The position numbers and the translations under genes were made by a program. From contig NC_043000.1 of the NCBI RefSeq assembly GCF_006345805.1, positions 153,016,001 to 153,080,000 on the forward strand: DNA of 64,000 bases. Reading direction: 5' to 3'. The DNA comes from Octopus sinensis. Taxonomy: Eukaryota. Shown here piece by piece: positions 24,528-60,261 of this stretch (position 1 is the stretch's first letter; the number at the start of each line of letters is the position of its first letter). The notes beneath the pieces are model-generated. The model ran no database searches, was not told the origin of the DNA, and saw only the letters and a program-made list of their open reading frames with translations.

Positions 24528-24624
24528 TAAAAATGGTAAGACAGCAAAAGAAAGGGACCTTGATATTATGTAAATAGAGGAATTTATCTGTAAATGTAAT
24601 ATGTGACAATTATTCGGTAGCCAT

Positions 24625-24685
24625 GATAAAACTCTGAGTTTCGGATGCTGAGGTGGAAATCCACGCCACCATCTCTTCAGTTATC
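24625..24685 (-). ncRNA. Type I hammerhead ribozyme motif (left arm)
   Basis: GAUAA-CUGAAGA-GAUG...CAUC-C-GAAA-CUCAGAG-UU/UUAUC: 5-bp helix I, near-palindromic helix III ACUC-A-GAGU, GUU site. Confidence 0.7.
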
Positions 24686-24733
24686 CAACCATCGGAAAAA
24701 TGCTATAATGGGATAGCATTTTTTCGATGGCTG

Positions 24734-24794
24734 GATAACTGAAGAGATGGCAGCATGGATTTCCACCTAGGCATCCGAAACTCAGAGTTTTATC
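24734..24794 (+). ncRNA. Type I hammerhead ribozyme motif (right arm, sense to gephyrin)
   Basis: GATAA 24734-38, CTGAAGA 24739-45, GATG/CATC helix II, GAAA 24777-80, CTCAGAG, GUU with predicted cut after 24789, TTATC 24790-94. Confidence 0.7.
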
Positions 24795-24840
24795 ATGGCT
24801 ACCGAATAATTGTCACATATTACATTTACACACACACACA

Positions 24841-24891
<51 letters not shown>

Positions 24892-25086
24892 ATATATCCA
24901 TTTATCTTTCTTTCTCATTCTACTCATTACCAATATTTAGTTCATCATAATACCTTGGCTATCACCTTTCTCTCTTGCATTCTTCTTGCTCTTCTTTCCA
25001 TGTCTATCTGGCTTCTTCATTTGGTATGATGCCAATAGCCAAGACAGCAGGACACTAATCTAAATACTAAATATCATAGAATTTAG

Positions 25087-25121
<35 letters not shown>

Positions 25122-25279
25122 CCTCTTCCTCCTCCTCAATTTAGTTTTTAGTGGAATTAACTTTGCTTAGTCTCTTATCTCTTTGATATTGGCAAAATAA
25201 GTAACTGTGCTATACTAGAGTGAGTTTATTGACTACAGTCCTTTCTCTGAAACCTTGTTCCTAGTTAAAAGAAGTCAAT

Positions 25280-25703
25280 AGGCGCAGGAGTGGCTGTGTG
25301 GTAAGTAGCTTGCTAACCAACCACATGGTTCTGGGTTCAGTCCCACTGCGTGGCATCTTGGGCAAGTGTCTTCTGCTATAGCCCTGGGCCGACCAATGCC
25401 TTGTGAGTGGATTTGGTAGACGGAAACTGAAAGAAGCCTGTCGTATATATGTATATACATCTATATGTATGTGTGTGTATGTGTGTGTGTGTTTGTGTGT
25501 CTGTGTTTGTCCCCCTAGCATTGCCTGACAACCGATGCTGGTGTGTTTACGTCCCCGTCACTTAGCGGTTCGGCAAAAGAGACCGGTAGAATAAGTACTG
25601 GGCTTACAAAAGAATAAGTACTGGGGTCGATTTGCTCGACTAAAGGCGGTGCTCCAGCATGGCCGCAGTCAAATGACTGAAACAAGTAAAAGAGTAAAAG
25701 AGT
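25280..25703 (+). mobile_element. SINE family A
   Basis: Full-length match. Confidence 0.9.
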
Positions 25704-26083
25704 ATGCTCACTATAAATTTACTGTTCTCTTTTTGTCTCCCACCTTTTCCTTCTCTCCCACTTAATTCCACCAGCTCCTCTTTCTCAGTCTCATCCTTCC
25801 TCTCTCCTTTGCCTCTCTGTTTGACACTTATTCTCTTTCTTTCTTAATCTTACTAGCTCTCTCTCTCTCTCTTACCTCTGCTGGTTTTCTATGTGGTCAA
25901 GCAATTTCTTTGAAATAGCTTCTCAAAAAAAATCTGGTTGTCTTAAAAATAGGAGGAGATAACCACCCCCGCTCCCAAGTATGATCTCCTTCTACCTGTT
26001 CATTCTTTCACTCCTTGGTCAGCTTTACTTCTCTTAGCATAGCACCTTATCTCACCATCCTACTTGTTATCTTGTTATCTCTA

Positions 26084-26313
26084 GCGGTGAGCTGGCAGAA
26101 ACGTTAGCACGTTGGGCGAAATGCTTAGTGGTATTTCGTCTATCGTTACGTTCCGAGTTCAAATTCCGCCGAGGTCGACTTTGCCTTTCATCCTTTCGGG
26201 GTCGATAAATTAAGTACCAGTTACACACTGGGGTCGATGTAATCAACTTAATCCCTTTGTCTGTCCTTGTTTGTCCCGTCTATGTTTAGCCCCTTGTGGG
26301 CAATAAAGAAATA
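26084..26313 (+). mobile_element. SINE family B with 16-bp TSD (1 mismatch)
   Basis: TATCTTGTTATC(T/C)CTA at 26068-26083 and 26314-26329. Confidence 0.88.
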
Positions 26314-26434
26314 TATCTTGTTATCCCTATGTACTTGATACATAGGACAACGCAGTCTCAAATATGCAAATATAATGTGTGATGGTCAGATCTGCTCAAT
26401 CAGACATTTTCCTCCTTGTCCCCACCTCTGTCTA

Positions 26435-26475
<41 letters not shown>

Positions 26476-28847
26476 ACTCTTTGGTCTATTTTCCTGTGAT
26501 TTTCTTTTTACTATTTTCATTCTGATACCTTCCATTCTTTTTACTCTCCTTCTCTCTTAACATCTCTCCTTCCTCATAAATTTCCCCTACTAATCATGTC
26601 TCATCAAATTTCCCATCATGTTCAACTGGTATGGTTTATATACCTAACTGAATTCAAATAAACAATAAAACAAATGCAAAGCAAAATCAAAATCAAAATA
26701 GGGTGGTGGGGTAAGTTAGGGCACTGTGAAGGTTTAGTATTTCAAGGTTCTCCAGGTGAGAATATTTTCATTTTCCTTCATTTAAAGGCTCTACCCAATT
26801 TACAGAAGATAACTTTTCTTCCTATAAGCTATCATTATTTACTTGTACTAACAGGTTTCTCTCACAGACTAATAAGAAAACCTTTAAACAGTTGCTCAAC
26901 CTGTTAGAAATAGCAGATAAATTTCTTTTAAATCAAACCCTACTTTTAAAAAGTTAGTACATATTTGAAAATGTGGTTATAGATATAATGCAAAAATGGA
27001 TTGGTTGTGGCTGGAATGCCTTTGACTTTAGATCTGTTCTTTCAGAGCCAATCTGGGGCTAAACTACAAACAGCAGTTTTGCAAATTGAGCTGGCTCTTC
27101 TTGTTGAGCCTGTCTCTCAGCTGCTGACTGACTGCTATTTGTCTGAATGTGTTCAGTCCCACTGAGGAAACCAAAGCCTTGTGAGTGGATTTGGTAGATA
27201 GAAGCTGAAATAAGACCATTGTGTATGTCATCATCATGCTCCGTACTGGATTTTATATATATATATAAATATATATGTATATACATACATACAAACATAC
27301 AGTCATCTAAGAATCCCTAAGTTGGAAAGAATACACGCATGTATATTTGTCAATAGAGTGGGTACAGTAATCCAAGTATACAGTATTATAGATTCATTTC
27401 AGTTAATCTTACCAATTGGTTTTGCTCTGGATATCAGATAACTGATTATTAGATAAGTAGTTAAGTAGCATTACATGCTCTTCAGAGAAAGCAGTGCATA
27501 TTTTTTCAACTTATGGATTCTTAGTTGACTAACACATCCCCTCATATTGCAGCATATATTGCAATAGACCACCCACAACTTGTGCCTTATAGATGCTATC
27601 CCTGGATGTGCACTCCACATGGTCATCGAAGACTCTCCACAGGTACATTTTATACATCTTTTTACCACATATCTGTCATCTCTGAGGAGCATATGGTGTT
27701 ACTTAACCACACCGTTATTTAATATCCAGTGTGAAACTGATTGGTAAGATTGGCCGAAATGGATCTATAACACTTTACTTGGATTAATGAATATGTATGG
27801 ATGAATGCATATGAATGTATATATGTCTGTTTACATCTGCTATGTCTTGTGCGAAAGTGAGGCAGGCAATGTTGTTAGATTCTCCTATCAACAAATTCTC
27901 CAGGCAGTTTGTGCCTTAGAAACTGTGGAATAAGTTTTCTCTTACTTGAGGTGAGGGCATTACACTGTAAAACAAAGCATCAAAAAAGATTATCTGGCTG
28001 TAAAACAAGGCCTTAACATATTCATCCAACCTATGGAAGTGTGGCAAAATGGATGTAATATGAACTGATGAACAAATGTCTAGCCCAGCCAACAAGTTTC
28101 AACATATTTTCAAATGTTTTTGAATGATTAGAGATCCTGTCTGCTTCACTGTTTTATTGAATGGGTGAGAATTGGTGACAGGAAGGGCATTTGGCTGTTG
28201 AAAATCTGCCTCTACAAATTCCATCTAATCCATACAAGCATGGAAAAGTGTGTATGTTAAATAATGATGTTGATTGAGAACACTAAATTACAAGTTGTTA
28301 TTTAGCCCAAGGCATTTCAGTTGTGGCCATCTGGTCTTTCTTGTAAAAAAAAATAATTGTATACCTAGAATCACATTATCAAATGTGCCTCCCAATTTTT
28401 TAACGATAAAGGTGTGTTATGAGAGAATTTTGGCAGCTATATCTAGCAAGTCAAGCAACCACATAGAAGCTTCCTTGCTGAAGATATAATATTTAAATGT
28501 TACAGTCATTGAAAGCTTTTGACAAATCAAAATTGCAATTTAGTTTCCATTATGAATTGAAGATTTTTTTTACTGTATCCTTAGATTCTTGGGGAAGGGT
28601 ATGAAAGTCTTAAAACTTCATGAACATTCTCATCCTATTAGAAAATAAAGCTTCTATATAACAAAGAAAGAAAAAAAAAGAACTCCAGTTATTCCAAAAC
28701 ATAATGAGAAACAGAATACACATGCCACAAAAACATATAACAATAACTTGGTGATTATTTTTTAAATTCTGCTGAAATTATGACAAATCTGTTTTTAAAT
28801 ACTCTCTTGCATATATATGCATTTACATACATGCATACTATCTAACA

Positions 28848-29180
28848 CAGGCCTGGCCAACTTGAATTGCATTGCAGGCCACTTTAATCACAGAAAATTT
28901 TTTGAGGGCTGCTTGTATACTGACAGAATTGAAAGCATTTTGCTTTCTCATGCTATTATTACAATAATGAACGAATGATCTTTGATTCAACATGAAATAC
29001 TATCGTTGCAAAAACGGTAGTATCGATTTTTTTTACTTTTCATTACAATCTTTAATTTTTGATATAATTTTTAAAAAATGTTTGTTTAAATAAACCCATT
29101 TCAAGAAAGTATCAAGTGGGTTGCATGATAAAAGTTTGCGAGCTGCATATAGCCTGCGGGCCTCAGGTTGACCAGCCCTG
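28848..29180. mobile_element. hAT (Charlie-like) MITE
   Basis: TIRs CAGGCCTGGCCAAC / CAGGGCTGGTCAAC; 8-bp TSD ATCTAACA (28840-47) vs ATCTTACA (29181-88). Confidence 0.75.
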
Positions 29181-29802
29181 ATCTTACACATACATAAATA
29201 CTTAGATATATGCAAATATTTACACACAAAGACTTTCTCATTTCTTTCTTTACTCTAATTCACTTTCTTACACATACACACACGTACACACACACTAACA
29301 TATATGCTCCCTCTTCTGCCATATATACTCAGAGAAACACACAAGTATTTATTCCACCAACACGACTTCATCACTTCCTTACCTACACAAAGCTAAGCAG
29401 ACAGTTACAATCCCTAAAATGCTGACACAATCATACACACAACCCCAGATAGACAATGACAATCACTCACATATTCACAAACAGGTCCTTTAATTTTTTT
29501 ATTACTCAATCCTTCAACGACACATATTTAGACACTCATGCATACATACACACATTGACACCTACATACGCTTTATTTGCACCGATGCAGAAGTGCATTA
29601 AGGTGTTAATATAATGGTGATATACTTGTACTTACTGTGAAAGAAGATTTTCAGAGCAAGGACCTCGCTCTCATTTTTATGCATGAAATCATAAGTGCCT
29701 AATTTAAGATAAATTTATATAACAAATATATTTGTTTTATGTGACTACTAATGTTTCTTATATTATTTTTGAATATAATAACGATTTATATATATATATA
29801 TT

Positions 29803-29836
<34 letters not shown>

Positions 29837-29911
29837 GTGTGTGATTTTAGGTATATGTATCAATTTGAAACAAGAAAGAAAAGCAGGCCGTCTAGCAGGA
29901 TCTGAAATGCA

Positions 29912-29950
<39 letters not shown>

Positions 29951-30399
29951 ACTACGTGCTGGATGACCAGCCAAACTTGATGGATATACAGTTTGGATTC
30001 TGTTCGTAGGCTTGTTTTTTTTTCTCTTTTTCTGCCTTAAATTCATACTTACAATGCCTATTATCATTTTACTAGGAAAATCTTAGCAGTTAATTCACAT
30101 GAAGCTGGAGCTTCAAATGAATAAACTCTACTACAAGCATTGAGTAATTTTTTTTTTTGTCTCTTTGCATTTAGTTGGAATCACCAACAGTCATAGCATC
30201 TCACTATGATAGGAATATTATACATCATCATCATCATCATCGTTTAGCGTCCGTAACACAATATAATGATGACCACACAAAGTATGTGTACTATTCCCTG
30301 TATTGAGAGCATGCAACTGATGAGTTCTGCTATGTATATGAATAAGAATAGTTGTCACATGTTTTCATTTCATCAGTTATGTTTTTAAAAGGTTTATAT

Positions 30400-30660
30400 G
30401 GAGCTCGTGGAGCCATGTGGCTTAGTGGTTATGGTGTCAGCATCATGATCGTAGGATTGTGGTTTCGATTCCTGGACTGGGCGACGCGTTGTGTTCTTGA
30501 GCAAAACACTTCATTTCACGTTGCTCCAGTCCACTCAGCTGGCAAAAAGGAGTAACGCTGCGATGGACTGGCGTCTCGTCCAGCTGGGAAACACATACGC
30601 CATGGAAACCGGGAAACCGGGCCCATGAGTCTGGCTAGGCTTTAAAAAAGGTGCATCTAT
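30400..30660 (+). mobile_element. tRNA-derived SINE, family C-type tail
   Basis: A box TGGCTTAGTGG, B box GGTTTCGATTCC; tail GGAAACCGGGCCCATGAGTCTGGCTAGGCTTTAAAAAAGGTGCAT shared with 35001-35297 (-). Confidence 0.8.
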
Positions 30661-31131
30661 TTATTTTATTTATATGGAACACAATGTTGCCTAGACAAGA
30701 AAAACAAAGTACAGTCAGAGTGTTCAGTTCATAGTTGTAGAATGTGTATTAAGACAAGAGCAGGAATATGCTTGTGGAAGTGGTGAATGTGCTAATACTA
30801 GTTTAGGTGGTTCATTTTACTAATGCAGCCTTTTGATAGTCATAACTGTGGAGACTGCTAAATGCAAAGATTTGCTGGGAGGTCTTGTTTCTCTGTTAAT
30901 GTCACTAACCTCCTAGCATTCAGACTACCTGCCTGGCAAGTTCTATCTTCTCAGATCTAGTCTCTTTTTATGTACTGCAGCACAAATTTTATGAAGCTGA
31001 TTTATAGTCGCCTCATTGCTAAAACATCCCGTAATTTATGTACGATTTCATTGGCCAGCTAGTTTTTGCTGGTGTCATCACTCAACTGCCAAAACTCCAA
31101 AGTTCATTGTTCAGATCAATGTGTAGACCTG

Positions 31132-31167
<36 letters not shown>

Positions 31168-31545
31168 TGTGTGGTTTTGTTTGTGAATGTATGTCTCTTG
31201 ACATCATGGGCTGGCTTTGATTGAGCATCACTGTCATAGAAGTGATGTCCTCTTACAGTTTTCTGTGAAAAACATGTCTGGCCATGAACCATTACATTTC
31301 TTAAAAACAGGTGAAAGTTGTTGGCAAGAAGAGTATTTAGTTTTAGGAAATCTACCTTAAGGAATTCCATCTGATCCATGCTAGTATGTGTAAAAACGAT
31401 CATCATGATAATAAATATGGTGCAGGCATGACAACTGTGCTACTTGGATTACATCCAGCGATAGTAAAAGCAACAACAGCATGAGACCCAGCTGTAGCAT
31501 CAATAGCCTTAATGACTAACATCACCAGCGCAAGAGCACAAACGT

Positions 31546-31800
31546 GGAAATATGTCAGTCCCACAGGCGGCCTGTCCAAGCAGCATCTGAGTAACCATAG
31601 GTCCTCTTTTAGGATATCAGAGAGACACGTGTTCCTGGCCGGCTAAGTATTGCATTTAAAGAGGAGAGTGCACCATATATAATTGAATGGAGGATCCTAG
31701 AACAACTGGGACTATATCTAAACAGGAGTAAATTATGTAAGCTTTGCTTGGCCAAAGGAGCAAGGGTCCTGAGAAAATCACTTGATCTGGGGACATTTTT
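31546..31800 (+). pseudogene. Decayed Penelope-like GIY-YIG endonuclease fragment
   Basis: KYVSPTGGLSKQHLSNHRSSF (YIG-like, NH..SF) and PYIIEWRILEQLGLYLNRSKLCKLCLAK (W.IL...Y....C.LC motif). Confidence 0.6.
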
Positions 31801-31812
31801 AAACATCAGAAA

Positions 31813-31847
<35 letters not shown>

Positions 31848-32834
31848 CTGAAGTTAATAAAAGAAAATGGAGAAGAAAAATATAATAGATACTTGGTTCA
31901 TTTTATTTGTATCACAGTGGAAAAGTAATGCAAAGTAAAAGTGATAAGAATATAGATAAAAGAATCCAGATCAACAAAACAACCAAAAAATATCTGGAAA
32001 AAATTCTACACATGTTTCAATCCGACAGTATGTTTGAATCAATATTTCAACGATCAATATTAGCTAAATTTCATCGACCAGTATCTAATCACATGATCTC
32101 TGAGTCCTAATAAGTTGTTTACATTTGAAAATTTCAATGAACAGTCCTCAAATTAGGTATTTTGTAATTCAAGACCGGAAAATATACTTGCTTTTAAAAC
32201 TGACCAGAAGACTGTGTCTGTTTAGAAAGAAGGGCAAGAGTGAGTGGAGAGCTCATGGCCAGGTATGGTCGTAACTATTGTCAAGATTTTAGGAGTAGTA
32301 ATGGGTATAAAGTATTTGTCTATAAAGGAGGCTATGTAGGGGAAGACCCCCAAATCATGGTGTTAATTATCAGTTAATGGGGCAAGACGCTAATAAAACT
32401 TGTGATGATAATACATGGGAAATTTTATGATGGGGTACCATGCATAGGTGGTTGTTTATAAACAGCATTGTTATGTTATATAGATAAAATTTTAGATTAT
32501 CAAGCATATCATAACCAAAATAGATAAAATGTGTATGTATATCAATTTTCAACATTAAAAAGGAAAGATTACATAGCATCAGTTTAATATTCATTCATAT
32601 GCATAATTATATACTTATTAGATGGTTTGTCTAAAGACTGCTCTTGGCATTTACTTATGGAATACTGGAAAGACAATATATTAATTATAAGCCACGGATC
32701 AGAAAAAAATAAAGTTGTGTACAGATACACATATTTATGTGCACACATATACGTTTGTATGGATATAGTATAAACATCTCGCATAGACATAAGTTACTAG
32801 AAAGTATCAATCTCTATTTCAGAACAATAACAAC

Positions 32835-33268
32835 TTATAGAGATAAGAGGTTAATAGGTAAGGATGTCAAAAGTAAGAAAACAAAATAATATATATACAT
32901 CAACCTATATATAGGTAGATATATAGATATATATATGTATAGGTAGTTATACAGGTAGATATAAATAGATATATGTATATATATATATATATATATAAAA
33001 GTAAATAAATGGCACAACGAAGCACCGATATTTACTGGAAAATAGCGAACGTATATATATATATATGTGTGTGTATGCATATATATATGTATGCATATAT
33101 ATATATGCATATGTGTATATATATATATATATCACCTTGATCGACCAGTCCGTCGGGCGTCCATTTGACACCGCTTGTCACAGCACGCTGTCCACACCTC
33201 TGCATAAATATATACATATATGTATGCATCATATATATATGCATATATATATACATATATATATATGT

Positions 33269-33309
<41 letters not shown>

Positions 33310-33330
33310 TATGTATATGTAAGCCTGTAT

Positions 33331-33366
<36 letters not shown>

Positions 33367-33385
33367 GTATGTATGTATATATATG

Positions 33386-33424
<39 letters not shown>

Positions 33425-33545: not shown

Positions 33546-33677
33546 ATTTAGAGACAAACCGCTATTTAGTTAATCTATCAATATTGAAAAGGTGTTATCT
33601 ATAATAACCACATAGATATTAATTAAATATCTTATAATTATTATACTAAAAATCTCATGACGAATGAAATATTAAAT

Positions 33678-35949: not shown

Positions 35950-36370
35950 TTATGCTGACATCAAACGAAATGTACATTTCCACTTCAAAAAGCAAATAAA
36001 AAATTTTTACGGAATTTACCGAACGCTGTACCTTAACAGCTGATAGATCATTGACAACTCTGTGACTCAAAACAAAGGATAGTCCTCGCCGAAACTTATC
36101 TCCTGCCATAAAATCTTCGATGATATAATGATACCAGAAATAAATCACTGCTTTAATCCCCACCTTTAATCCTCTGCATCGACAACAGGTTGCATTTCCA
36201 GAATACAGAATGATACCCTTTAGTGAACATATTGAGAAATGTGCAAAGCAACTACTACCACAATTTATAATCTCCATTCTATCAATGTGCTACTGGAACA
36301 CCAACACAAGTTAGATTAAACAAGGAAACCCTCTTCATTGAAAAATATAAGCCAAAACTTAACCACTTCT
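35950..36370 (+). pseudogene. Decayed Penelope-like endonuclease C-terminus
   Basis: HRQQVAFPEYRMIPFSEHIEKC...PFYQC...KETLFIEKYKPKLN, the PLE H.QQI...P.S.H...C...PFY...E..FI....P.LN pattern. Confidence 0.65.
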
Positions 36371-36756: not shown

Positions 36757-36800
<44 letters not shown>

Positions 36801-36802: not shown

Positions 36803-38700
36803 ATACTTTGATACTTTGATAGGTTTCGGCCATTATTGGCCCAGGCCATGTCTAACTTAATACCACCACCTGGTGAAGTCTTTCAAGTCAGAATTTGGGC
36901 ACTATGGCCCACTCAAGTAGAGAGTTATTGTTTACAGAGACATATCCGGGTGTAGGGGGTTTATCCGGGATTTCTTGAAGGAATCTGTCCAAAGACTTCT
37001 TGAACCCTATAGGGTCTGTTTCTGTTTTAATGTGTTTTGGTGTAATGTTAAAGAGAGCGGGGCCAATTGAGGTGAAATAATTGTGCCGTATTGTTGTTAT
37101 GAGATGAGAGTGCGATTTTTGTTGTGGGCGGATGGCACGGGGCCCAAGCCTTGGATGTACCTTAAAGGTGATGCCAACATCATTTGGGCAATGCTGATGG
37201 AATATTTTCCACATCATGCAGATGATGTAGCGCTCACGGCGACGTTGGAGAGAATAAAGTTTTAGCTTTTCTAGTCGACCTCAATAGTCGAGGCCTGTCA
37301 TGCCATCTATCTTTTTTGTGATTGCCCTTTGAGGTGCTTCAACTTTTATGATACTTTGTTTTGTGTGGGGAGACCACAGTGGACAACAGTATTCAAGGTG
37401 GGGTCGGGCAAAAGCGGAGAAGAGAAGGATAATGTTGTGGATATCTCTCGACTGGAAAGTTCTGAGAATCCAGGAACACATTCTGCGGGCCATGTCAACT
37501 TTGGTGTTTATATGAATGGCCCAGCTTATGTTGTTGTCCACAATTACTCCCAAGTCTCTGATGTTGTTGGATGCCACGAGAGTTTCACCTGAAGGAAGGG
37601 AGTATGGGAGTTTCAGGGCATCCTCTTTTCTAAAGTGGATTAACTCGAATTTATCCTCGTTCAGCAGCATATTGTTCTTTTCTGCCCATTGGATAACAGC
37701 CAGTAGATCTGACTGAAGGCATGTCCGGTCACTCGCCTCATTTATGACCTTCTGGAGCTTGGAATCATCTGCAAAGATTTTTATGTTGCTGTGCTTGATG
37801 ATGTCATTAATGTAGATGATAAAAAGAAGTTGGCCCAGCACAGTGCCTTGCGGAACGCCACTACTGACTTTGGCTGGGCTTGATTTTACCCCTTCAACTA
37901 CAACATGTTGAGATCTGTCTGTCAGGAAACACTTGATCCATTTCAGTAACTTTCCAGAGACACCAATGTTGGATAGCTTTTTCAATAGGATCTTGTGATC
38001 AACCCTGTCGAAGGCCTTGCTGAAATCAAGGAAGATGACATCGGTGTTGGAGCCCTCTCCCAAAGCTCTCAAAATGTCATCAAAGTGATGCAGGAGCTGC
38101 GTTAGGCAGTCCCTTCCATTACGGAACCCATGTTGGTTAGAGATCAGCCGTCTGTTGCTTTCCAGAAATTGGGTTATTCGAGATCTCACCACCCTCTCAA
38201 ATACCTTGATGATATGAGAGGTGAGTGAGATCGGACGGTAGTTCACTGCAAGGGACAAGTTTCCCTTTTTGAAAACTGGGACAACAGACTGGGACAGAAA
38301 GCTTTTAGGAATATAGCCAGCATCCAGTGAGTTTCTCCACAGATTAGCAAGGGGAGATGCAAGTTGGTGTCGACACACCTTCAGGACACAAGCAGAGAAC
38401 CTATCGGGGCCTACTGCTGAATTGTGTTTTATTTCGTTTATCGCCGCTAAGACATCAGGGGCACCAAACTATATGTCCGATATAGTGTGTTGGGGGTTGA
38501 CATCACTGATACAGCCCAGATCGGCCATATCAGGATTGCTGAAAACAGAGCAGTATTGTTTCTGCAGTATCTCGGCCATTTCCATCAATTAGAGGGCCAA
38601 CAGTGGAGACAGTGACCCTGTGTTTCCTCGCAAATGAAAAGAATACTTTGGGGTTGAGTTTGATTCTTTCATTATATCAACTTCTCCTCAACTGATCTTT
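36803..38700 (-). mobile_element. 5'-truncated CR1-group LINE (RT and C-terminus) with (ATCAAAGT)n tail
   Basis: 365-aa ORF 37281-38378: QHGFR, FLDFSKAFDRVDH, SGVPQGTVLG, FADDSKL, RPHLEYCCPLWSPH; continuation 36888-37217. Confidence 0.92.
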
Positions 38701-38777
38701 GGTTATTGATGAGGGTCTTCATGCATTGTTGGAGGTTATATTTTTGGGATATATATATATATATATTATATATATAT

Positions 38778-38855
<78 letters not shown>

Positions 38856-38858
<3 letters not shown>

Positions 38859-39398
38859 CAAAATAAGGGTAAAAGAAAAATTCTAATGCCAAATATGCCG
38901 AAAAAAAGACAAAAATTGTCAATAACCATTATAATTTATGCGTCTCGAAACAAACCGATAGAAATTTCTAAAAAGTCCGTTATTACCGTATTGGTCCCAA
39001 TTTCGGGGTTAATTCATAAGAATTTTCCCCTCTTCAGCGATAAATACGTGAGATATAAGTGAAATACTTACTCATACCCACGGAAAAAGCAAGTACTAAG
39101 TCCTGAGCAGACCTAAGTACCCCAAATATATCCAAAATAGAAAATCTTCCGCATATCTCGAGACACGTGTAATTCGAACTAGAAACTTTCACAGAGTGAG
39201 AGAAACTGGAAGTGAACACTATTAAATTTATAACTAATGTAGAATAACATTTTTTTCGGGGAAAAATGTTATCAATGGCCAGCATACCAAAAAATACCTT
39301 TAACGGTTAAATTTATAAATAATTTACAAAATAAGGGCAAAAGAAAAATTCTAATGCCAAATATGCCGAAAAAACAAAAATTGTCAATAACCATTATA

Positions 39399-39404
<6 letters not shown>
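38856..39404. repeat. 468-bp unit with ~84-bp direct terminal repeat, embedded in (TA)n
   Basis: TTACAAAATAAGGG(T/C)AAAAGAAAAATTCTAATGCC...CCATTATAATTTA at 38856-38939 and 39324-39404. Confidence 0.85.
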
Positions 39405-39440
<36 letters not shown>

Positions 39441-39664: not shown

Positions 39665-39725
39665 GCTAGACGATCGTTTCGTACAGGACAAGAATCCGTG
39701 TTGTCAAAGAGTACTCATCAGTAGC
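39665..39725 (-). ncRNA. Type I hammerhead ribozyme with fully canonical core
   Basis: GCUA-CUGAUGA-GUAC[...GACAA..UUGUC..]GUAC-GAAA-CGAUCG-UC/UAGC; G10.1-C11.1 pair, palindromic helix III ACGAUCGU, GUC site. Confidence 0.85.
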
Positions 39726-40249: not shown

Positions 40250-40654
40250 ACTCTTTTACTCTTTTACTTGTTTCAGCCATTTGACTGCGGCCATGCTGGA
40301 GCACCGCCTTTTTAGTCGAGCAAATCGCCTCTGGGACTTATTCTTTGTAAGCCCAGTACTTACTCTATCGGTCTCTTTTGCCGAACCGCTAAGTGACGGG
40401 GACATAAACACACCAGCATCGGTTGTCAAGCAATGCTAGGGGGACAAACACAGACACACAAACATACACGCACACACATATACATATATACCACGGGTTT
40501 CTTTCAGTTTCCGTCTACCAAATCCACTCACAAGGCTTTGGTCGGCCCGAGGCTATAGTAGAAGACACTTGCCCAAGGTGCCATGCAGTGGGACTGAACC
40601 CGGAACCATGTGGTTGGTAAACAAGCTACTTACCACACAGCCACTCCTGCGCCT
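40250..40654 (-). mobile_element. SINE family A
   Basis: Full-length reverse-complement match. Confidence 0.9.
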
Positions 40655-42633: not shown

Positions 42634-42840
42634 TCTTTTTTTTTTACTTGTTTCAGTCATTTTGACTGTGGCCATGCTGGAGCACCGCCTTTAGTCGAGC
42701 AAATCGACCCCGGGACTTATTCTTTTGTAAGCCCAATACTTATTCCATCGGTCTCTTTTGCCGAACCGCTAAGAGACAGGGACATAAACACACCAGCATC
42801 GGTTGTCAAGCATGCTAGGGGGACAAACACAGACACACAA

Positions 42841-42888
<48 letters not shown>

Positions 42889-43080
42889 TATATATATTAT
42901 ATATATATATATATATACGACAGGCTTCTTTCAGTTTCCGTCTACCAAATCCATTCACAAGGCATTGGTCGGCCCGGGGCTATTATAGAAGACACTTGCC
43001 CAAGATGCCACGCAGTGGGACTGAACCCGGAACCATGTGGTTGGTAAGCAAGCTACTTACCACACAGCCACTCCTGCGCA
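42634..43080 (-). mobile_element. SINE family A
   Basis: Full-length reverse-complement match. Confidence 0.9.
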
Positions 43081-48916: not shown

Positions 48917-50175
48917 TAATGTCATCCCATAAGTAATGTCCGAATTTTAAACAAAGAAAACAAGACCTTAAATCTTACATTTTAATGAAACTTAATCGCC
49001 AATATAGTTTCCATGATTATCTATGACATCTTTCCATCTACTCGTAAGCTTTTTAATACTATTAATGAAAAACTCGATTTCAAAGAGAACTCTGAAAGGT
49101 CAGTTTCGACTTCCTCAGTTGTCTCAAGAGTTAATCAATCCAAATTATTCTGTAAGCTACAGAACAAATGGTAATCTGAAAGAGCAAGGTCTGGGGGAAT
49201 AAGGCAGATGAGCGATTTTCTTCCAGCCAAGTTCCTCGATATTCTGTGACGTGATCTTTGCAGTGTGGGGTCTTGCATTGTTCTGATGAAACACCACTCC
49301 CTTTCGATTCATTAAAGCAGGCATTTTTTCTTCAAAGCAGCATTCAAACTCTTTAATTGCGGACAGTAAATCTGAGCATTGATTGTTGCCATAGTTGGTA
49401 GCAACTGAAAGTTGATGACTCCTTTGCAGTCCTATCAAACGGAGAGAACTTTCTTGGCATGGAGTTCCCATTTCGGTTGTGGTTAGGCCGTTTTCCCTTC
49501 AATCCAATGTCTATAACGCTTAACATTTGGAAAAAGACCCATTTTTTTAATCACCGGCCACTAGTCTGTCCAAAAAGGGTGAAATGAGTTCATGAGAACA
49601 AAGAGAAAAGCTGATGTCCACTCGGGATTTGCGGTTGGCTTCAGACAAATCATGAGGCAACCATTTTCCGAGTTTGAGGATCTTTTCAAGCTGTTGAAGA
49701 TGGCGGTGAACAAAGCTTGCTTGCCAGTTCTTCAACTGAAATTGCATAATCTTTTTCAAGTTTTGCCAAAAGGAGCTGGTCATCAAACTCAATTGGGTGT
49801 CCTGCTTGGACCTTATCTTCACGGTTGAAATCTCCACTTCTTAAATTTACAAACCATTTTCTGCAAGTTCTTTCCTTAAGGCATTCTCCTCCATAAGCTG
49901 AGTGACTATTTCAAGTCTCTTCAGCTACAAAGTTCTTTTTTTAAACTCATAAAGCATTATGTACCTCAAATGCTCCTTAGACACTTCCGTGTTTGAAGAG
50001 CTATATTTAGTGAAATTTCAATTAGATTATCCTGCAAAATGAAATTTAATTAGTTTAAATATATCCAAAAACATATAAATATCACTTGATGCCATTAGAC
50101 ATTCTAGAATATTGTTAAAACGTTTAAAAATTGAAAATATATTGAAGTCTGGACATTACTTATGGGATGGCCTAA
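48917..50175 (-). mobile_element. Full-length but decayed mariner transposon
   Basis: 25-bp TIRs (22/25 match, ...CATCCCATAAGTAATGTCC), TA on both sides, ~1.26 kb; transposase remnants HLRYIMLYEF, WLPHDL (WVPHEL), FHQNNARPH, HLPYSP. Confidence 0.9.
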
Positions 50176-51190: not shown

Positions 51191-51352
51191 GGCGCAGGAG
51201 TGGCTGTGTAGTAAGTAGCTTGTTTACCGACCACATGGTACCGGGTTCAGTCCCACTGCGTGGCACCTTGGGCAAGTGTCTTCTACTATAGCCTCGGGCC
51301 GACCAAAGCCTTGTGAGTGGATTTGGTAGACGGAAACTGAAAGAAGCCTGTC

Positions 51353-51387
<35 letters not shown>

Positions 51388-51611
51388 TGTGTGTGTGTGT
51401 GTGTGTGTGTGTTTGTGTGTCTGTCCCCCTAGCATTGCTTGACAACCGATGCTGGTGTGTTTATGTCCCCGTCACTTAGCGGTTCGGGAAAAAAGACCGA
51501 TAGAATAAGTACTGGGCTTACAAAGAATAAGTCCCGGGGTCGAGTTGCTCGATTAAAGGCGGTGCTCCAGCATGGCCGCAGTCAAATGACTGAAACAAGT
51601 AAAAGAGTAAT
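51191..51611 (+). mobile_element. SINE family A with ~23-bp TSD
   Basis: GAAGT(A)9-10TACAAGTTA at 51167-51190 and 51612-51634. Confidence 0.92.
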
Positions 51612-53134: not shown

Positions 53135-53685
53135 AAGGTGGCTTTCCCCTCGTTATCGAGTATGGCCATTGCACGAAGCTTAATCAATGTTGTTATCGTG
53201 CAATGCCTGTGCAAGAAGATTTTTTTTAAAGTGAGGAAAGGCTGTGCACTGAGTCAATCCCACTCACTAAGCAACAGCAGCCATAATCCGGAAAGAAGAA
53301 CAAGTCAACATCATCGGTAACCACTGAGCCGCAGGTTTTATGTCGGAGTTATCCCAGTTACCTGAGTTACCTTCTCCTTGAAGGATGCCCTAACAAAGGC
53401 TAGGAGTCCTTCACTCCCAATGGTTTAACCGCGCGATCGGGTATTCAGTCCGATTATTTCTATGTCCCCGCGCATGATACAGCCCCAAGACATTTATTGG
53501 ATGGCCGTTGACTCTCAAGAGTTTCTCCGCCCTTTGACGGTTTTTTTTTCATCCCGCAGGGTGTCCAATAAACATCCTCCTCACCAAGCAAGCTTGGTGG
53601 GGTTGCCGGTTTAGTCGCCTTCGACCCGACCATGCAACAGGTTGTACTGGGTTACATGTTACCAGTAGCACTCGAAAGTGACCAG
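53135..53685. mobile_element. Unclassified ~550-bp GC-richer element flanked on both sides by (TACA)n
   Basis: Sharp boundaries with (TACA)n tracts at 53042-53134 and 53686-53770; 10-bp hairpin CATTGCACGA/TCGTGCAATG near left end. Confidence 0.45.
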
Positions 53686-53766
53686 TACATACATACGTAC
53701 GTACATACATACAACATACATACATACATACATACATACATACATACATACATACGTACATGCATG

Positions 53767-53837
<71 letters not shown>

Positions 53838-54051
53838 AATGTACACTGTATTGAAAATAAGGGCTACTAATAGCTTCTTGCCATAGAGACATTCAGATTA
53901 AGCAGATTATATAACGTGCCTTGTTATATACAGTCTTCAAGCTCATGGCATACAGTCTTCAGGCTCATGGCACATGATTAGTTGTTTGTATTCGATGGTG
54001 TAGGTATATTCCTAATAAATTAGTCCATGTGGTATAAATCCATAATTGTGT

Positions 54052-54519
54052 GTTAGTTAGTTAGTTAGTTAATTTGGCTCAAAAGCAAATAGCAAGGCCA
54101 TGTAGGGGGACATAGAGTTATGTACAGGGTGGTGTTCATGCAAAGAGTTCAGGCCACTTGTGGTCAAGGGAGACTTTGAACCGAGCGGTCGTCGGCATCT
54201 TCACCATCTCGTCTGGCAGCTTGTTCCACGGATCCGCAACCCGGACGGAGAAAGCTCCTCTCCTTCGATTGAGATGAAATCGTCGCAGGTAGAGCTTTTC
54301 GGAATGACTCCGCAGCCGACGCTCTGGAGCAGGAGTGAAGAACAGCTCTTTTGAGAGGTTACACTTTCCGCTTATGATGTTGTGGGCGAGAATGAGATCA
54401 CTACGGCGGCGGCGTTTTTCAAGAGAATAAAGGTCGAGCGTCCTCAGCCTTTCTTCGTAGGACAAATTTTTGAGACCATGAACCATGCGGGTAGCCAGCT
54501 TCTGGACTCTTTCGAGAAT
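54052..54519 (-). mobile_element. 5'-truncated CR1 LINE 3' end with (TAAC)n tail
   Basis: LERVQKLATRMVHGLKNLSYEERLRTLDLYSLEKRR...FSVRVADPWNKLP, the CR1 C-terminal pattern. Confidence 0.9.
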
Positions 54520-54954
54520 TGGTAGAACCCTTAAAACCCTTAGAATCACTCAGCTTAACGTAGCTATAATGGCAAACGTATGGATTTTACACACACACAC
54601 ACGCACACATACACACACATGCGAGCGATCACAACGGTTTTATTCTATTTTTTCTCATTTTTCGACTCACTTTCATCCTATTTCACATTAAGATAAATTA
54701 TTGTTAGTACTTTTTGTAAACTGAATGTATACCTTAATTATACTGTTTTGAATTATTCGTTCGCAATTCATTCTTAAATTCCAGACATTAAGCCCTATTG
54801 ATTAATACTATTCCGTTTCACAGAAAAACAAAACAAAAAAAATCCCAATAAAAATACCTCCAAATATTTTCAGAATGGATACATAGTTGGTGTTGTAAAA
54901 AATGTGAATGGAAGAAGAAATTAGAAACCTAAACGAGTACCATAACACAATATA

Positions 54955-55237
54955 TTGTATATGTGTGTACGTATGTGTTTATGTGTATGTGTGTGTTTGT
55001 GTGTATGTATATGTTTGTGTGTATGTGTGTGTTTGTGTGTATGTATATGTTTGTGTGTGTGTGTATGCTTCTGTGTATGTGTGTGTTTGTGTGCATGCGT
55101 ATATGTTTATGTGTATGTGTGTGTTTGTGTGTATGTATATGTTTGTGTGTATGTATATGTTTGTGTGTACGTATGTGTTTGTGTGTATGTGTATGCTTCT
55201 GTGTATGTGTGTGTTTGTGTGCATGCGTATATGTTTG
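54955..55237. repeat. (TG)-rich compound minisatellite with higher-order ~128-bp duplication
   Basis: GTATGCTTCTGTGTATGTGTGTGTTTGTGTGCATGCGTATATGTTT occurs at ~55063 and ~55191. Confidence 0.85.
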
Positions 55238-56396
55238 TAAGCCCAATAATCCACCGATTCTTTGGAATACAACTGGAACATAAGACTTCGTCATTACACA
55301 CGTCATTGCTTTCTTTATTTCAAACATACTTAATCTCTGGCTTATTAAATGGCTATTGGTTATTAAGATGTTGGCCTTGAAGTTGGTTGTGTTTTCTATG
55401 TGATGGGTTCTAATCGAGCCCAATTTAAACCTTAAAGGAAGTGTGCTTCGGCTTACCTATGATCATAGAGGATGAAAGGCTGGGAAACGATTCTATCACG
55501 AAATAAAAACACTTTATCTTACAGACATAGAAAACTTCCAAGAACTTCGTCAGTTGTACAGTATCCTCATACATAATAATTTTGGAGTATATTTCGTAGG
55601 AGAGTTTCTTTTACAGATAACATTTAAATGGCTAAGTAACGAAGTGGACATAATTTGTTTGATAAAGAGTAGGATCCGTAAAACGGTTTGCCAGGAAGAA
55701 GAGAGTCTAATGTTTAGAACTGTACAATTCACTGGGAGAGGTGAATTTTGGTAGTGACAAATGAATAAATTGAGAAAGAGAGAGAAGGAAAAAAGGGAAA
55801 GATAAAAATTAAGTAAGGGTGAGTTGGGGATCTGACAATTTTTTATTAGCAGTCTGACACTCTATAGACGAGACTGATAACCTTTCTCAAAATAAACAAC
55901 AATGAAATGTTAATTTAAAATTCATAAATGAAAGAGAGGGTATAAAATAGAGTTTAGTAAGGGAATAAAAAAATTATTACATGAATTCTAGATAGGAAAG
56001 AGAAGGACAGTTCTTGTAATTATAAGCAAATCTACAAAACAAACTTTGAAATTCTGTTATTAAACGTTGATATAATTAGACGTTGAGTTTGATTATCTTT
56101 GAGTAATTAGAAACCACAAAAGTAACTTAAATGCTTTGTTTATTTTATTTGTAACATGCGTGTTCTGTGACTGAGTTCAAGTTTAGCCACTTGAGATGTT
56201 TCGAATGTAGCTACACATTTCATATCACTGGCACCTTGCCTACTTCCTATAATAGTAAAAGCTTATTTCCATGAATGTACTCTATATTCTCCAAATTACC
56301 TTCCCAAGACACGAAACACTCAAATCAAAACCTTTGTTTGTTTGTTTCTTTTTTTTTTTTTTAGTGAATGAAACTAACACGAAATCTCTACTGTTT

Positions 56397-56585
56397 GGCG
56401 AACTGGCTGGCAGAATCGTTAACATTTCTTCCGGTTTTATGTTCTGAGTTCAAATGCCACCGAGGTCGAATTTGTCTTTCCTCCTTTCGGAGGGAGTCGA
56501 TAAAATAAATAGCAGTTAAGCACAGGAATCAACTAGACCCTTGCCCACCAAATTTCAGACCTTGTGCTTATAACAGAAAGGATAT
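56397..56585 (+). mobile_element. Diverged SINE family B-like copy
   Basis: GCTGGCAGAATCGTT...GAGTTCAAATGCCACCGAGGTCGAATTTG. Confidence 0.65.
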
Positions 56586-56812
56586 TTTAGGAGTACAGTA
56601 AGGCGTTAAGCCGGCAAAATCGTTTACGCCTCTGACAAAACGCCTTGTGACATTTTTTCTGATTTTACGGTCTGAGTTCAAATTCTGTCTGAAAATCACT
56701 TAAGGTAGACATTCCACAGAAATGTTCCATCTTTCATAGAATGCTCCATGCTAACACATCTGGTCTTCCTGATTCCTTTCTATTGGTCCAAACATTACGA
56801 CTTTATAACCAA

Positions 56813-57120
56813 ACTAGCAGTATCTCCCGGCGTTGCTCGGGTTTGTAAGGGAAATAACTATGTAAAAATTTTTAGAGAGTTACTTCCCTTATATAACCCG
56901 AGCAAAAGTCATTAAAAATGCGGAAAAATGATGGTAAATTTTTTTTAAAATCGTAGACTCATCGTAGACGCGCGCTAATACCCAGAAGGAGTCGATATGA
57001 ATGACGACTATAAGATACCGCTTTTGGTTAAACTGCACCGCAAAATGTGGGAATAGTTTGGAATCTAAATCGGAGGAGACAGAATCTCACACACACAACT
57101 TCAATTTTATATATAAAGAT
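56813..57120 (+). mobile_element. Helentron-like non-autonomous element
   Basis: ACTAGCAGTATCTCCCGGCGTTGCTCGGG start, TTTTATATATAAAGAT end; homologous to 1-115 and 42093-42489. Confidence 0.7.
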
Positions 57121-58702
57121 AACATTTGCGGAACATTTGCCTGATAAATTCGATGAATTTCAACAGTAAGTTCTGTTGTCTGTTAATCCATTTCCGTTGA
57201 GTCCGATTACATTAACCGACATGGAGACGTTAACTTCTTGTCAATCTTCCAAGTAATTTACTCTGATACAAATATATTTGTTTTTATAGACTAAATTTCG
57301 CTTTACGCTATCGGATTCAATGCTTTACTACCGAGTACCATGCAACATAATCTTCGAACAAAATAATGAAAGAAACCCTAAAAAACACCAATAATCTTTA
57401 TAACACAAGTGTACTGTATTCTAAAATCAGTTATGCGTGCATTCAAAATAAATATGTAACCTAAGAATAGTTATCAAATGCACGATTACTTTGCACCAAC
57501 AGTTCTACGTAGTACAAAATGGGGAGCATTCTATTGTTTAACACATGTTTAAATCGAGAATGATTGCTGCTCAAATGTATTTTGAAGAGAATTTCGTATA
57601 AAGGTTTGTAAAAAAAAAAAGAAATGATAATGATGGCCTTCATTTGACAAATGTCTAGCTTTTCGGGTTTTAGCTTAAAGATGAGAATTATGGTATTGTA
57701 TGTTCCACCCGTTTTTTTTTTCTTTTGGCTTCCCAATTCTCTGCCAGCAACAATGCTAATTTGCATCTCTAGGACTTATGGTATTGTTATAAAGCGGCTT
57801 TCTAAACAGAAAACTCCGCATTTGTTCGCCTCTTATTTACGGTTCACTTCAAAGAGACAAAAAGCAGATTTTAACAGCTAGAGTGCTTATGATAACAAAA
57901 GATACATATGTGCATTTATACACGAATGCATAAAATGAATCTCGTATTATATATAAGACTATATGTATACATATGTCGGTATGTATCCATGTGTACTTAT
58001 AAAGTTAATGACTATCATTGTATGTATATATTTTTCTCTTTTATACGTTCATATAGCCATATGCATATGCACGTGTGTGCGCGCAATTTTGTGTCAATTT
58101 ATATGCATTGAAAATAACTTTTTCTGTAAAAAAATAACTTTTCCTGTAAAAAAATGTTAGATGTTTCGTGGTATTTTATACAAACACATATACACATATT
58201 TGTGTGTGCGTGCTTATGTATGTTTATACAATATACATACATTTCACACATACGTAATCACATACACATAAAACAGTCAGTTTTTAATATATATGTATGT
58301 GTGTATGTGTATTACTCTCAAATTTGATTACTTTTGCATTTATTATTATTAACGTTGAAATATAGTGTCAATACATGAACTGTAACAATAACTGGACCTA
58401 TATTAAATATTTTTTCACTTTGCTAATTTGATTACATATAATATAGTTACATCGAATTCTGGTATAGCCGACCATTTTCAAGAGTTAAAGGAGATAGCAG
58501 ATCACGGAAGGACAGACATTCACACAAACTGTACTCATATAAATACAAATTCCAACTAGAAACAGAAAGAGCGTTTTATTGAAAAGGAAACAGAAAGTCC
58601 ATTGCAATGAAATTAGCAACAGAAGCTTACAATTCACAAATTTAGAGTATGAAAGTGTTCACTTATATATATATAAGTTATAAACCTGTATATATTAAAG
58701 TT

Positions 58703-59210
58703 TGAAGGCGGCAAGCTGGCAGACACGTTAGCGCACCGGGCGAAATGCTTTGCGGTATTTCGTCTGCCGTTACTTTCAGAGTTCAAATTCCGCCGAGGTC
58801 GACTTTGCCTTTCATCCTTTCGGGGTCGATAAATAAAAGTACCAGTTTTGCACTGGGTCGATGTAATCGACTTGATCCGTTTGTCTGTCCTTGTTTGTCC
58901 TCTCTATGTTTAGCCCCTTGTGGGTAGTAAAGAAATATATAACTTGCTTTTCAGGTCGCAAAAATAAAAAAAAATGAAGGCGGCGAGCTGGCAGAAACGT
59001 TAGCACGCCGGGCGAAATGCTTTGCGGTATTTCGTCCGCCGTTACTTTCAGAGTTCAAATTCCGCCGAGGTCGACTTTGCCTTTCATCCTTTTGGGGTCG
59101 ATAAATTAAGTGCCAGTTACGCACTGGGGTCGATATAATCGACTTAATTTGTTTGTCTGTCCTTCTTTGTCCTCTCTGTGTTTAGCCCCTTGTGGGTAGT
59201 AAATAAATAA
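58703..59210 (+). mobile_element. Head-to-tail dimer of SINE family B within one 15-bp TSD
   Basis: Monomers 58703-58937 and 58975-59210; GTATATATTAAAGTT at 58688-58702 and 59211-59225. Confidence 0.85.
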
Positions 59211-59211
59211 G

Positions 59212-59434
59212 TATATATTAAAGTTAGATAAGACCGATTTATGGGACTACCTTAAATTTACGTCCAAAAACGGCTTAGCTTTATGGCGTATCATCAGATT
59301 CAAAAACCTATTGGCTAAAGGCCTCTCTCGCTAGAGACAGATTTTGGGATTTGATTATACACCATAAAGCTAATCCCTTTATGGAATTGAAACCTAAGGT
59401 AATCCCATAGACCGGCCTTATCTAACTTTAATAC
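59212..59434. mobile_element. Older ~220-bp foldback element with two decayed head-to-head hammerhead motifs
   Basis: Arms start TATTAAAGTTAGATAAG / end CTTATCTAACTTTAATA; left arm (-) keeps CUGAUGA, right arm (+) keeps helix I, helix II, GAAA and helix III. Confidence 0.7.
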
Positions 59435-59708
59435 ATATGTGTGTTTGTGTGTTTGTGTGTATGTGTGTGTGTGTTTGTGTGCGTGTGTGTGTGTGTGTGA
59501 AATATTAAAAGGTTGCACAGAAAGTCGACAAGGGGTGCATGGGAAACATACACAAAAGACGTGAATACGATCACTCCCTCATCAGTTATATCCGAGTTTG
59601 TATCACTGTGTGTAGAACAATATGTTAATCAATGAAATTCCAACTAAATATTATTCTCACGTTTTATTATTTGCAATTTTTACAATTTTACAATTTTACA
59701 ATATTGAA

Positions 59709-59750
59709 ATAAACTAGTACTTTCATGCGTCACGCAATCATCAGGTTCAT
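59709..59750 (-). ncRNA. Minimal type I hammerhead motif (left arm)
   Basis: AUGAAC-CUGAUGA-U-UGCG-UGA-CGCA-U-GAAA-GUAC-UA/GUUUAU; 6-bp helix I, palindromic AGUACU; U-U at 10.1/11.1 is non-canonical. Confidence 0.6.
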
Positions 59751-59815
59751 ATAGTGACAGTCGTGTTCCACGATTGACAATTGTCGTCAATTGTGGAACA
59801 CGACAGTTACAACAA

Positions 59816-59853
59816 AAATCTGATGATTGCGTAGCACATGAAAGTACTAGTTT
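59816..59853 (+). ncRNA. Minimal type I hammerhead motif (right arm), slightly decayed
   Basis: CTGATGA 59820-26, GAAA 59840-43, GTAC, CUA site; 4-bp helix I, one mismatch in helix II. Confidence 0.5.
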
Positions 59854-60261
59854 ATTTCAATATTGTAAAATTGTAAAATTGTAAAATTGTAAAAATTGCA
59901 AATAATAAAACCTGAAAATCACACTAAGCTGGATTTCATATATATATATATATAATATATATATATATATATGTGCTCTACCTTTAAGCTAAACTGCCCA
60001 CCGACAAACTCTTCTATTTTAGAAGTTATAAAGTCATCCAGAACGCTTGATGTCATATAGATTACGTCATATGTAAATAAACATATATATACTGTTCTAT
60101 CAGTATTTACGTGATGAAAAATATATCTTTCCACTTGTTCTACACACACACACACGTATATATATACATGCATACATACATATATACTTACATATATAAA
60201 AATATTTAGATATATATTCATATATATATGTGTGTGTGTATGTATGCATGAATGTATGTAC

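Follow-up and report, generated by a model that had tools for sequence, protein, structure and literature searches.

Introduction

Insertions of Penelope-like elements (PLEs) are strongly 5'-truncated and often partially tandem, carry hammerhead ribozymes in a pseudo-long terminal repeat (pseudo-LTR) near the 3' end, and may show an "inverted 5'-truncated copy ... adjacent at the 5'-end" (Craig et al., 2021, PMC8557442). A further study of PLEs likewise reports pseudo-LTRs, inverted ones among them, together with 5' truncation (PMC8969392). Moreover, "dual min-HHRs" (two minimal hammerhead ribozymes), situated ~100-700 bp apart on opposite strands, have been described in Schistosoma mansoni and ascribed to truncated PLEs (Cervera and de la Pena, 2014, PMC4209133). 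Here we describe a 64,000-nucleotide stretch of the Octopus sinensis genome (assembly GCF_006345805.1, contig NC_043000.1, positions 153,016,001 to 153,080,000, forward strand; hereafter the window, with positions counted from its first letter), in which three short foldback elements, E1, E2 and E3, hold a hammerhead motif in each of their two arms and a fourth, asymmetric pair, P4, has the same head-to-head orientation. We argue that these four loci are probably dead insertion products of PLE-type retrotransposition, and not a separate kind of element. Complex tandem and inverted PLE insertions, with a head-to-head inverted and 5'-truncated copy, were reportedly noted by Evgen'ev and Arkhipova in 2005 and by Arkhipova in 2006.

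The targets of PLEs are biased toward microsatellite or AT-rich DNA (PMC8557442; PMC11167929), and both target strands can prime and be extended in vitro by a purified Anolis PLE protein (PMC11167929). Furthermore, reverse transcription in that study starts internally, 111-118 nt into the open reading frame (ORF), with the hammerhead cut at +26 (PMC11167929). The dimer-type hammerheads of PLEs and other metazoan elements have a characteristic signature, in which helix I is short, helix II long and helix III palindromic and A9 is followed by an unpaired base (PMC4209133); according to the literature, such hammerheads need a second sense copy or a protein for cleavage.

Compared with the complex PLE insertions that carry inverted pseudo-LTRs (Craig et al., 2021, PMC8557442), the octopus pairs are alike in their head-to-head orientation with the 3' ends outward, in the hammerhead near the 3' end, in heavy 5' truncation, in microsatellite or AT-rich targets, and in the presence of PLE ORF remnants in the window, but here both copies measure ~100-150 nt, are mostly symmetric and consist of the hammerhead module only, with neither an ORF nor a 30-40-bp tail. 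With the dual min-HHRs of S. mansoni (PMC4209133) they share two opposite-strand minimal type I hammerheads within a few hundred bp, each with a short helix I, a long helix II and a palindromic helix III; whereas that paper devotes one sentence to the arrangement, without anatomy, the present loci are near-perfect foldbacks with 6-29-nt centres in a different animal genome. Metazoan non-LTR retrozymes (Cervera and de la Pena, 2020, PMC7229834; Li et al., 2026, preprint, 10.64898/2026.07.22.740005) are likewise short and non-coding, contain a type I hammerhead dependent on dimerization, and are thought to depend on PLEs; one 1.18-unit copy in the window fits this kind. However, retrozymes are direct tandem repeats (at least dimers, with a 170-400-bp unit that contains one hammerhead) and form unit-length circular RNA, whereas E1-E3 are inverted, so that two sense ribozymes never occur in one of their transcripts and a unit-length RNA cannot be set free. 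Finally, L1 twin priming resembles these loci in that an inversion arises during target-primed reverse transcription, but L1 inverts adjacent, non-overlapping parts of the template, whereas here the same 3' segment occurs twice.

The literature already contains the arrangement as well as its link to PLEs, and E1-E3 are new examples. A first-pass annotation of this DNA had put E1-E3 forward as a new element class, a proposal that is not sustained, since head-to-head inverted 5'-truncated PLE copies have been published (PMC8557442, PMC8969392) and dual opposite-strand min-HHRs have been known since 2014 (PMC4209133).

Results

In a self-comparison of the whole window, E1, E2 and E3 were the three longest short-spacer palindromes (Table 1). 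The arms are complementary over 94.1% of positions in E1, 80.8% in E2, which is older and decayed, and 82.6% in E3, where each arm ends in (UUGUAAAA)3-4 followed by ~45 nt. The foldback of E3 is real, but its length of 251 bp in the first-pass annotation fell short of the 308 bp measured here by ~29 bp per side. BLAST of the three elements against the window returned their own opposite arms and microsatellites only, in agreement with the earlier statement that they are unrelated in sequence; no further copy of any of them was found in the 64 kb, no target-site duplication was found at E1, E2 or E3, and no terminal motif is shared, the termini being unrelated to one another. P4, which the first-pass annotation had missed, has arms ~70% alike, with ~170-190 nt between them. 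From the centre outward, each arm is laid out as a leader of ~10-35 nt, a minimal dimer-type type I hammerhead and a tail of 34-90 nt, which stops at the junction with host DNA, often a microsatellite; in all four pairs the arms are joined at their 5' ends, and their 3' ends face away from the centre. One further short-spacer palindrome in the window, near-perfect at 74 bp and 86%, is devoid of a hammerhead motif.

Hammerheads were sought with a descriptor demanding a perfect CUGANGA and GAAA, an A15.1-U16.1 pair with a short insert, H17, and helices I and II of at least 4 bp each, with one bulge and one unpaired base allowed on either side of helix II. Eight sites were found in the window against a mean of 0.017 per shuffle (60 dinucleotide-preserving shuffles), and a stricter version gave four against 0.01. 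The eight sites comprise both arms of E1, both arms of E3, the right arm of P4, a partial tandem element, and two single hammerheads, one of which (HHR_A) has a textbook sequence. Counting arms with decayed cores, seven hammerhead loci are present in 64 kb, namely four inverted pairs that face outward, a partial tandem and two single hammerheads. When one mismatch was allowed, six extra sites appeared where two were expected; none has a palindromic helix III, and they were taken as chance matches.

With a slash after H17, the left arm of E1 reads GAUAA CUGAAGA G-AUG...CAU-C-C GAAA CUCAGAG UU/UUAUC and that of E3 AUGAAC CUGAUGA U-UGCG-UGA-CGCA-U GAAA GUAC UA/GUUUAU, whereas the right arm of E2, with a mutated core, reads UGGGAU UUGAUUA ... 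GAAA CCUAAGG UA/AUCCCA. Helix I has 4-6 bp and is open (type I), and helix II has at least 4 bp, with a bulge or unpaired base after A9. The helix III inserts (CUCAGAG, CCUAAGG, GUAC, CCAAUUGG, CGAUCG, CAAUUG and UUGGGACCAA) lie 0-2 positions off a perfect palindrome, and helix III is palindromic at 7/7 hammerhead loci, a feature outside the demands of the descriptor. For E2, a core position was accepted if the correct base stood in either arm; this union of the two arms satisfies the descriptor, whereas among 3000 shuffles of the columns of the alignment just one did so (5 of 3000 at a looser setting). Indeed, much of the anatomy claimed at first pass was borne out, since a type I hammerhead points outward in each arm (with perfect cores in both arms of E1 and E3, and through the arm union in E2), a short palindromic helix III is present in each element (CUCAGAG in E1, CCUAAGG in E2, GUAC in E3), and the hammerheads are of the minimal, dimer-dependent type I kind found in PLEs.

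A scan against Rfam, which had been proposed as a check, gave a different result, since cmscan returned zero hammerhead matches over the whole window and over narrow slices, both at the gathering score and at E<=10. This negative weighs little, because HHR_A was missed as well in an 801-nt scan at E<=10, and it was on account of this negative control slice that our own descriptor and shuffles were used in place of Rfam. At E<=10, well over 100 sub-threshold "miRNA" matches were also returned (mir-297, mir-3149, mir-1277, mir-466 and also MIR7723), which sit on (TA)n/(TG)n microsatellites, e.g., at 33059-33129, 60232-60302 and 24820-24897, and are simple-sequence or generic-hairpin artefacts.

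These results make it highly improbable that the foldbacks are DNA transposons, either foldback or similar to miniature inverted-repeat transposable elements (MITEs), that resemble hammerheads by chance. Their whole-arm inverted repeats and their sizes of 226-308 bp do recall MITEs and foldback elements, and a mariner remnant lies at ~49.2-49.9 kb, but both arms of E1 and of E3 match a descriptor with the low chance rate given above, helix III is palindromic in every case, and the target-site duplication, shared terminal motif or second copy that such an origin calls for is absent from the window.

Table 1. Positions in the 64,000-nucleotide window of the hammerhead foldbacks, the other hammerhead loci and the surrounding sequences.
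Feature	Position	Strand	Remarks
E1	24589-24830		242-bp foldback; arms 24589-24706 and 24713-24830, 118 nt each; 6-nt centre
E1 left-arm hammerhead	24625-24685	-	C3 to H17 = 24680-24630; perfect core; helix I 5 bp
E1 right-arm hammerhead	24734-24794	+	C3 to H17 = 24739-24789; perfect core
(AC)n(TA)n(TG)n microsatellite	24828-24890		adjoins E1 right end
E2	59212-59437		226-bp foldback; arms 59212-59309 and 59339-59437 (98 and 99 nt); 29-nt centre
E2 left-arm hammerhead remnant	59242-59303	-	CUGAUGA intact; G12 lost (UAAA)
E2 right-arm hammerhead remnant	59345-59407	+	C3 and G8 mutated
Imperfect (TG)n tract	59438-59498		directly after E2
E3	59632-59939		308-bp foldback; arms 59632-59778 and 59786-59939 (147 and 154 nt); 7-nt centre
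E3 left-arm hammerhead	59709-59750	-	descriptor site 59715-59744; perfect core; helix I 6 bp
E3 right-arm hammerhead	59816-59853	+	descriptor site 59820-59849; perfect core; helix II weakened, CG to CA
(AT)n microsatellite	59938-59972		adjoins E3 right end
P4, fourth head-to-head pair	27365-27789		arms ~27365-27500 and ~27667-27789
P4 left-arm hammerhead remnant	27403-27488	-	G12 to A; helix III CCAAUUGG
P4 right-arm hammerhead	27679-27753	+	descriptor site 27682-27746; perfect core
Partial tandem element	38857-39405	-	1.18 units of ~466-bp hammerhead element; its hammerhead (HHR_B) 38989-39037; (TA)n on both sides
HHR_A, single textbook hammerhead	39669-39721	-	CUGAUGAGUAC...GUACGAAAC GAUC GUC/UAGC
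Single hammerhead	63717-63793	+	helix III CAAUUG; 1.27 kb downstream of same-strand PLE reverse-transcriptase remnant
PLE reverse-transcriptase remnant	62156-62451	+	homologous to reverse transcriptase + GIY-YIG proteins; tblastn E 1e-17 to 8e-23
PLE remnant	36162-36369	+	residues ~677-709 of a 745-aa relative; E 5e-12, 18 query proteins
Short-spacer palindrome	56833-56905		no hammerhead motif
LINE near two hammerheads	36891-38468	-	reverse-transcriptase ORF matches RVT_1 at E 1e-28
LINE copy	1873-4416	-	endonuclease/exonuclease/phosphatase domain 3871-4407; RVT_1 pieces 2303-2632; PHD-like zinc finger 1873-2217
Likely mariner/Tc1-type transposase remnant	49160-49910	-	weak Mos1 HTH_48 match below Pfam cut-off
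Exon-like stretch	20783-20908	+	weak match to MoCF_biosynth end (gephyrin/MoeA-like), E 1.7e-4, below Pfam cut-off
~415-bp repeat, copies 1-6	5921-6336, 7656-8078, 10890-11314, 11927-12331, 15944-16349, 16969-17372
~415-bp repeat, copies 7-11	18670-19082, 25282-25702, 40251-40652, 42634-43079, 51192-51610

Microsatellites make up 3.9% of the window, and a position drawn at random has a 4.6% chance of falling within 3 bp of a tract, whereas at least 4 of 10 element ends touch one (the right ends of E1 and E3, and both ends of the 466-bp element). The inverted repeats halt at the element ends and exclude the flanking (AC)n, (TG)n and (TA)n tracts, which favours duplication at insertion over later DNA repair. 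A palindrome made at the DNA level, in which template switching during replication, or fold-back repair of a nearby double-strand break, later gave a single hammerhead insertion its inverted duplicate, is therefore quite unlikely. Short-spacer palindromes are a known outcome of fold-back priming at breaks, and centres of just 6-29 nt agree with such an origin; nevertheless, a separate event would be required at each of the four loci, each duplication would have to halt exactly at the outer end of the element, and the sole other short-spacer palindrome has 74 bp, so that palindromes seem to be no general property of the region.

Two different elements occur at one (TA)n tract (38749-39437), with the ~466-bp element inside it and HHR_A ending ~230 nt upstream, and no more than 200 bp separates E2 from E3, next to (TG)n and (TA)n. 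These paired neighbours suggest that microsatellites act as insertion hot spots.

The claim of the first-pass annotation that PLE remnants exist in the window was confirmed by ORF remnants at two places. The proteins matched by both of them carry RVT_1 and GIY-YIG domains, and the second remnant falls in the stretch where the scanned relatives of 698-817 aa have their C-terminal GIY-YIG domain. These remnants belong to families different from those of the foldback arms. The single hammerhead at 63717 lies approximately where the PLE 3' region of the reverse-transcriptase remnant is expected. An exact-match protein look-up with one ORF of the window came back empty, a word-indexed protein search with a PLE fragment gave zero candidates, a 22-kb Argonauta hians locus had neither a hammerhead nor similarity, and a 24-mer of E1 had 0 matches in metagenome contigs.

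As a positive control, the same descriptor was applied to 80 independent loci encoding reverse transcriptase and GIY-YIG on metagenome contigs (346 kb). Sixteen hammerheads were found, 15 of them on the ORF strand, lying either before the ORF or, in most cases, ~180-280 nt beyond the ORF end. The few foldbacks in these contigs (L025, L040 and L078) have no hammerhead.

The two motifs of a foldback lie on opposite strands and point outward, so that a transcript of either strand has one sense hammerhead in its 3' half and the exact antisense in its 5' half, the antisense arm being transcribed first, 6-29 nt from its sense partner. For the two strands, whole-element hairpins are predicted at -193/-201 (E1), -95/-115 (E2) and -161/-173 kcal/mol (E3), whereas single arms are predicted to fold at -14 to -24 kcal/mol, and the catalytic monomer fold at -2.6 kcal/mol against a minimum free energy of -11.3 in E1 and at +0.9 against -5.4 kcal/mol in E3. 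Moreover, a foldback transcript offers neither the second sense copy nor the protein that such hammerheads need for cleavage. Consequently, two proposals of the first-pass annotation had to be given up: that one RNA carries twin ribozymes, as either transcript pairs a single sense hammerhead with its antisense copy, and that this RNA switches between hairpin and self-cleaving fold, as hairpins of -95 to -201 face a catalytic fold of ~-3 to +1 kcal/mol and the antisense is made first.

The same figures bear on a broader view, namely that the foldback itself transposes as a distinct, non-autonomous class with two arms and two hammerheads, mobilized by PLEs, whose RNA alternates between hairpin and ribozyme fold. 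Three of the four pairs are symmetric, with arms of 98-154 nt and a common layout, 4/7 hammerhead loci in the window are pairs, and copying of a discrete short RNA as far as its 5' end, primed from both target strands, would naturally give symmetry. However, beyond the sense-antisense composition and the energies just given, copying of such an RNA would take the PLE reverse transcriptase through a perfect hairpin of 100-150 bp, E1, E2 and E3 are each single-copy in the window, and published features of PLE insertion already account for the arrangement. Arm divergence reaches 6-19% in E1-E3 and 30% in P4 and the E2 cores are broken, and there is no sign of maintenance by selection. We therefore hold that a transposing foldback is rather unlikely.

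Other sequences around the foldbacks include two LINEs (long interspersed nuclear elements). The reverse-transcriptase ORF at 37281-38378 was considered as a PLE partner and rejected; it belongs to a LINE, since its best solved relatives are LINE-1 ORF2p and R2 and its motifs are of LINE type. The product of this ORF shares 61% identity with a hypothetical protein of Argonauta hians. The likely mariner/Tc1-type remnant rests on its Mos1 match and also on a translated stretch recognized by eye, which we take to be transposase-like. For the exon-like stretch, the closest database proteins are 66% identical, and E1-E3 could be intronic if this MoCF fragment belongs to a host gene on the + strand. 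By far the commonest repeat of the window is an interspersed one of ~415 bp, with 11 full-length copies in both orientations, at 86-94% identity to the first and usually adjoining (TG)n/(TA)n tracts; its copies account for the larger spaced inverted repeats of the self-comparison.

Discussion

Of the proposals made at first pass, the link to PLE-type mobilization is the one that we retain as the best reading. The outward 3' ends in 4/4 pairs match the published inverted 5'-truncated PLE insertions (PMC8557442, PMC8969392), and each arm is most likely the 3'-terminal ~100-150 nt of a hammerhead-bearing RNA. During integration, PLE-type reverse transcription would have copied the terminal hammerhead module alone, and the inverted second arm may have been added by either of two routes. 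In a snap-back route, the short cDNA would fold back and prime its own complement, which fits E1 and E3 because of their near-perfect symmetry and 6-7-nt centres. In the other, both cleaved target strands would prime cDNA, and a template jump would join the two cDNAs, which fits the P4 pair at 27.4 kb because it is asymmetric. The template might have been an autonomous PLE truncated at its 5' end, or else a short non-autonomous RNA, similar to a retrozyme, that depends on PLEs. As PLE hammerhead families are highly diverse, the lack of sequence relationship among the families of E1, E2 and E3 is accounted for. Since their insertion, the arms have diverged by 6-30% and the E2 cores have decayed, a course that fits neutral relics, and foldbacks inside longer transcripts would simply form long hairpins.

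In this context, the position of the outer ends is relevant. Since PLE reverse transcription starts internally, past the cut site (PMC11167929), the end of an insertion is expected tens of nucleotides (~85-92) beyond the hammerhead cut. In E2, E1 and P4 the cleavage site lies 34-43 nt from the outer end, and in E3 it lies 90 nt away.

Several observations weigh against regarding the foldbacks as dead PLE insertion products. Head-to-head hammerhead pairs numbered 0 in the 80 metagenomic PLE contigs, which are short, and no arm matches the 3' end of a longer PLE copy within the window. The one-sided 30-40-bp tail, which is optional in the literature, was not found in E1-E3, whose arms end alike on both sides. 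Furthermore, all seven differences between the arms of E1 fall in the inner half (~60 nt, comprising leader, 5' strand of helix I and helix II), whereas no difference falls in the outer 60 nt, which run from G12 to the element end. Such clustering is not expected if a snap-back product has simply decayed neutrally, although it may be due to chance. In helix II of E1, a U-A pair in one arm stands against C-G in its partner; as a candidate compensatory change this was non-significant by a rough estimate, and it was dropped. Finally, symmetry is nearly perfect in three of the four pairs, and every pair is cut off just upstream of the hammerhead, so that random, independent 5' truncation is inadequate and either snap-back or a discrete short template is required.

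The second of these requirements leads to a more specific proposal, which we advance tentatively and consider doubtful, that symmetric foldbacks are the regular footprint of a discrete PLE-dependent template RNA of ~100-150 nt, a "SINE of PLEs" (SINE, short interspersed nuclear element), copied to its 5' end by a dimeric PLE complex from both cleaved strands. Such a template, at the same low likelihood, might consist of a module that binds the PLE protein-RNA complex plus a hammerhead. If true, this would be in vivo evidence for both-strand priming, which has so far been obtained in vitro only, and would define a recurrent insertion type that seeds long-hairpin, double-stranded RNA loci at microsatellites.

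Conclusion

In brief, the hammerhead foldbacks of this O. sinensis window are, as they stand, a clean example set of what PLE specialists describe, and they open no long-standing question. With four of the seven hammerhead loci head-to-head and three of these near-perfect foldbacks, the pattern could help to separate snap-back from both-strand priming in PLE integration. Moreover, Rfam-based scans miss every hammerhead in the window, and such elements are therefore probably under-annotated. As relics, the foldbacks are ready-made long hairpins wherever they come to lie inside transcripts.

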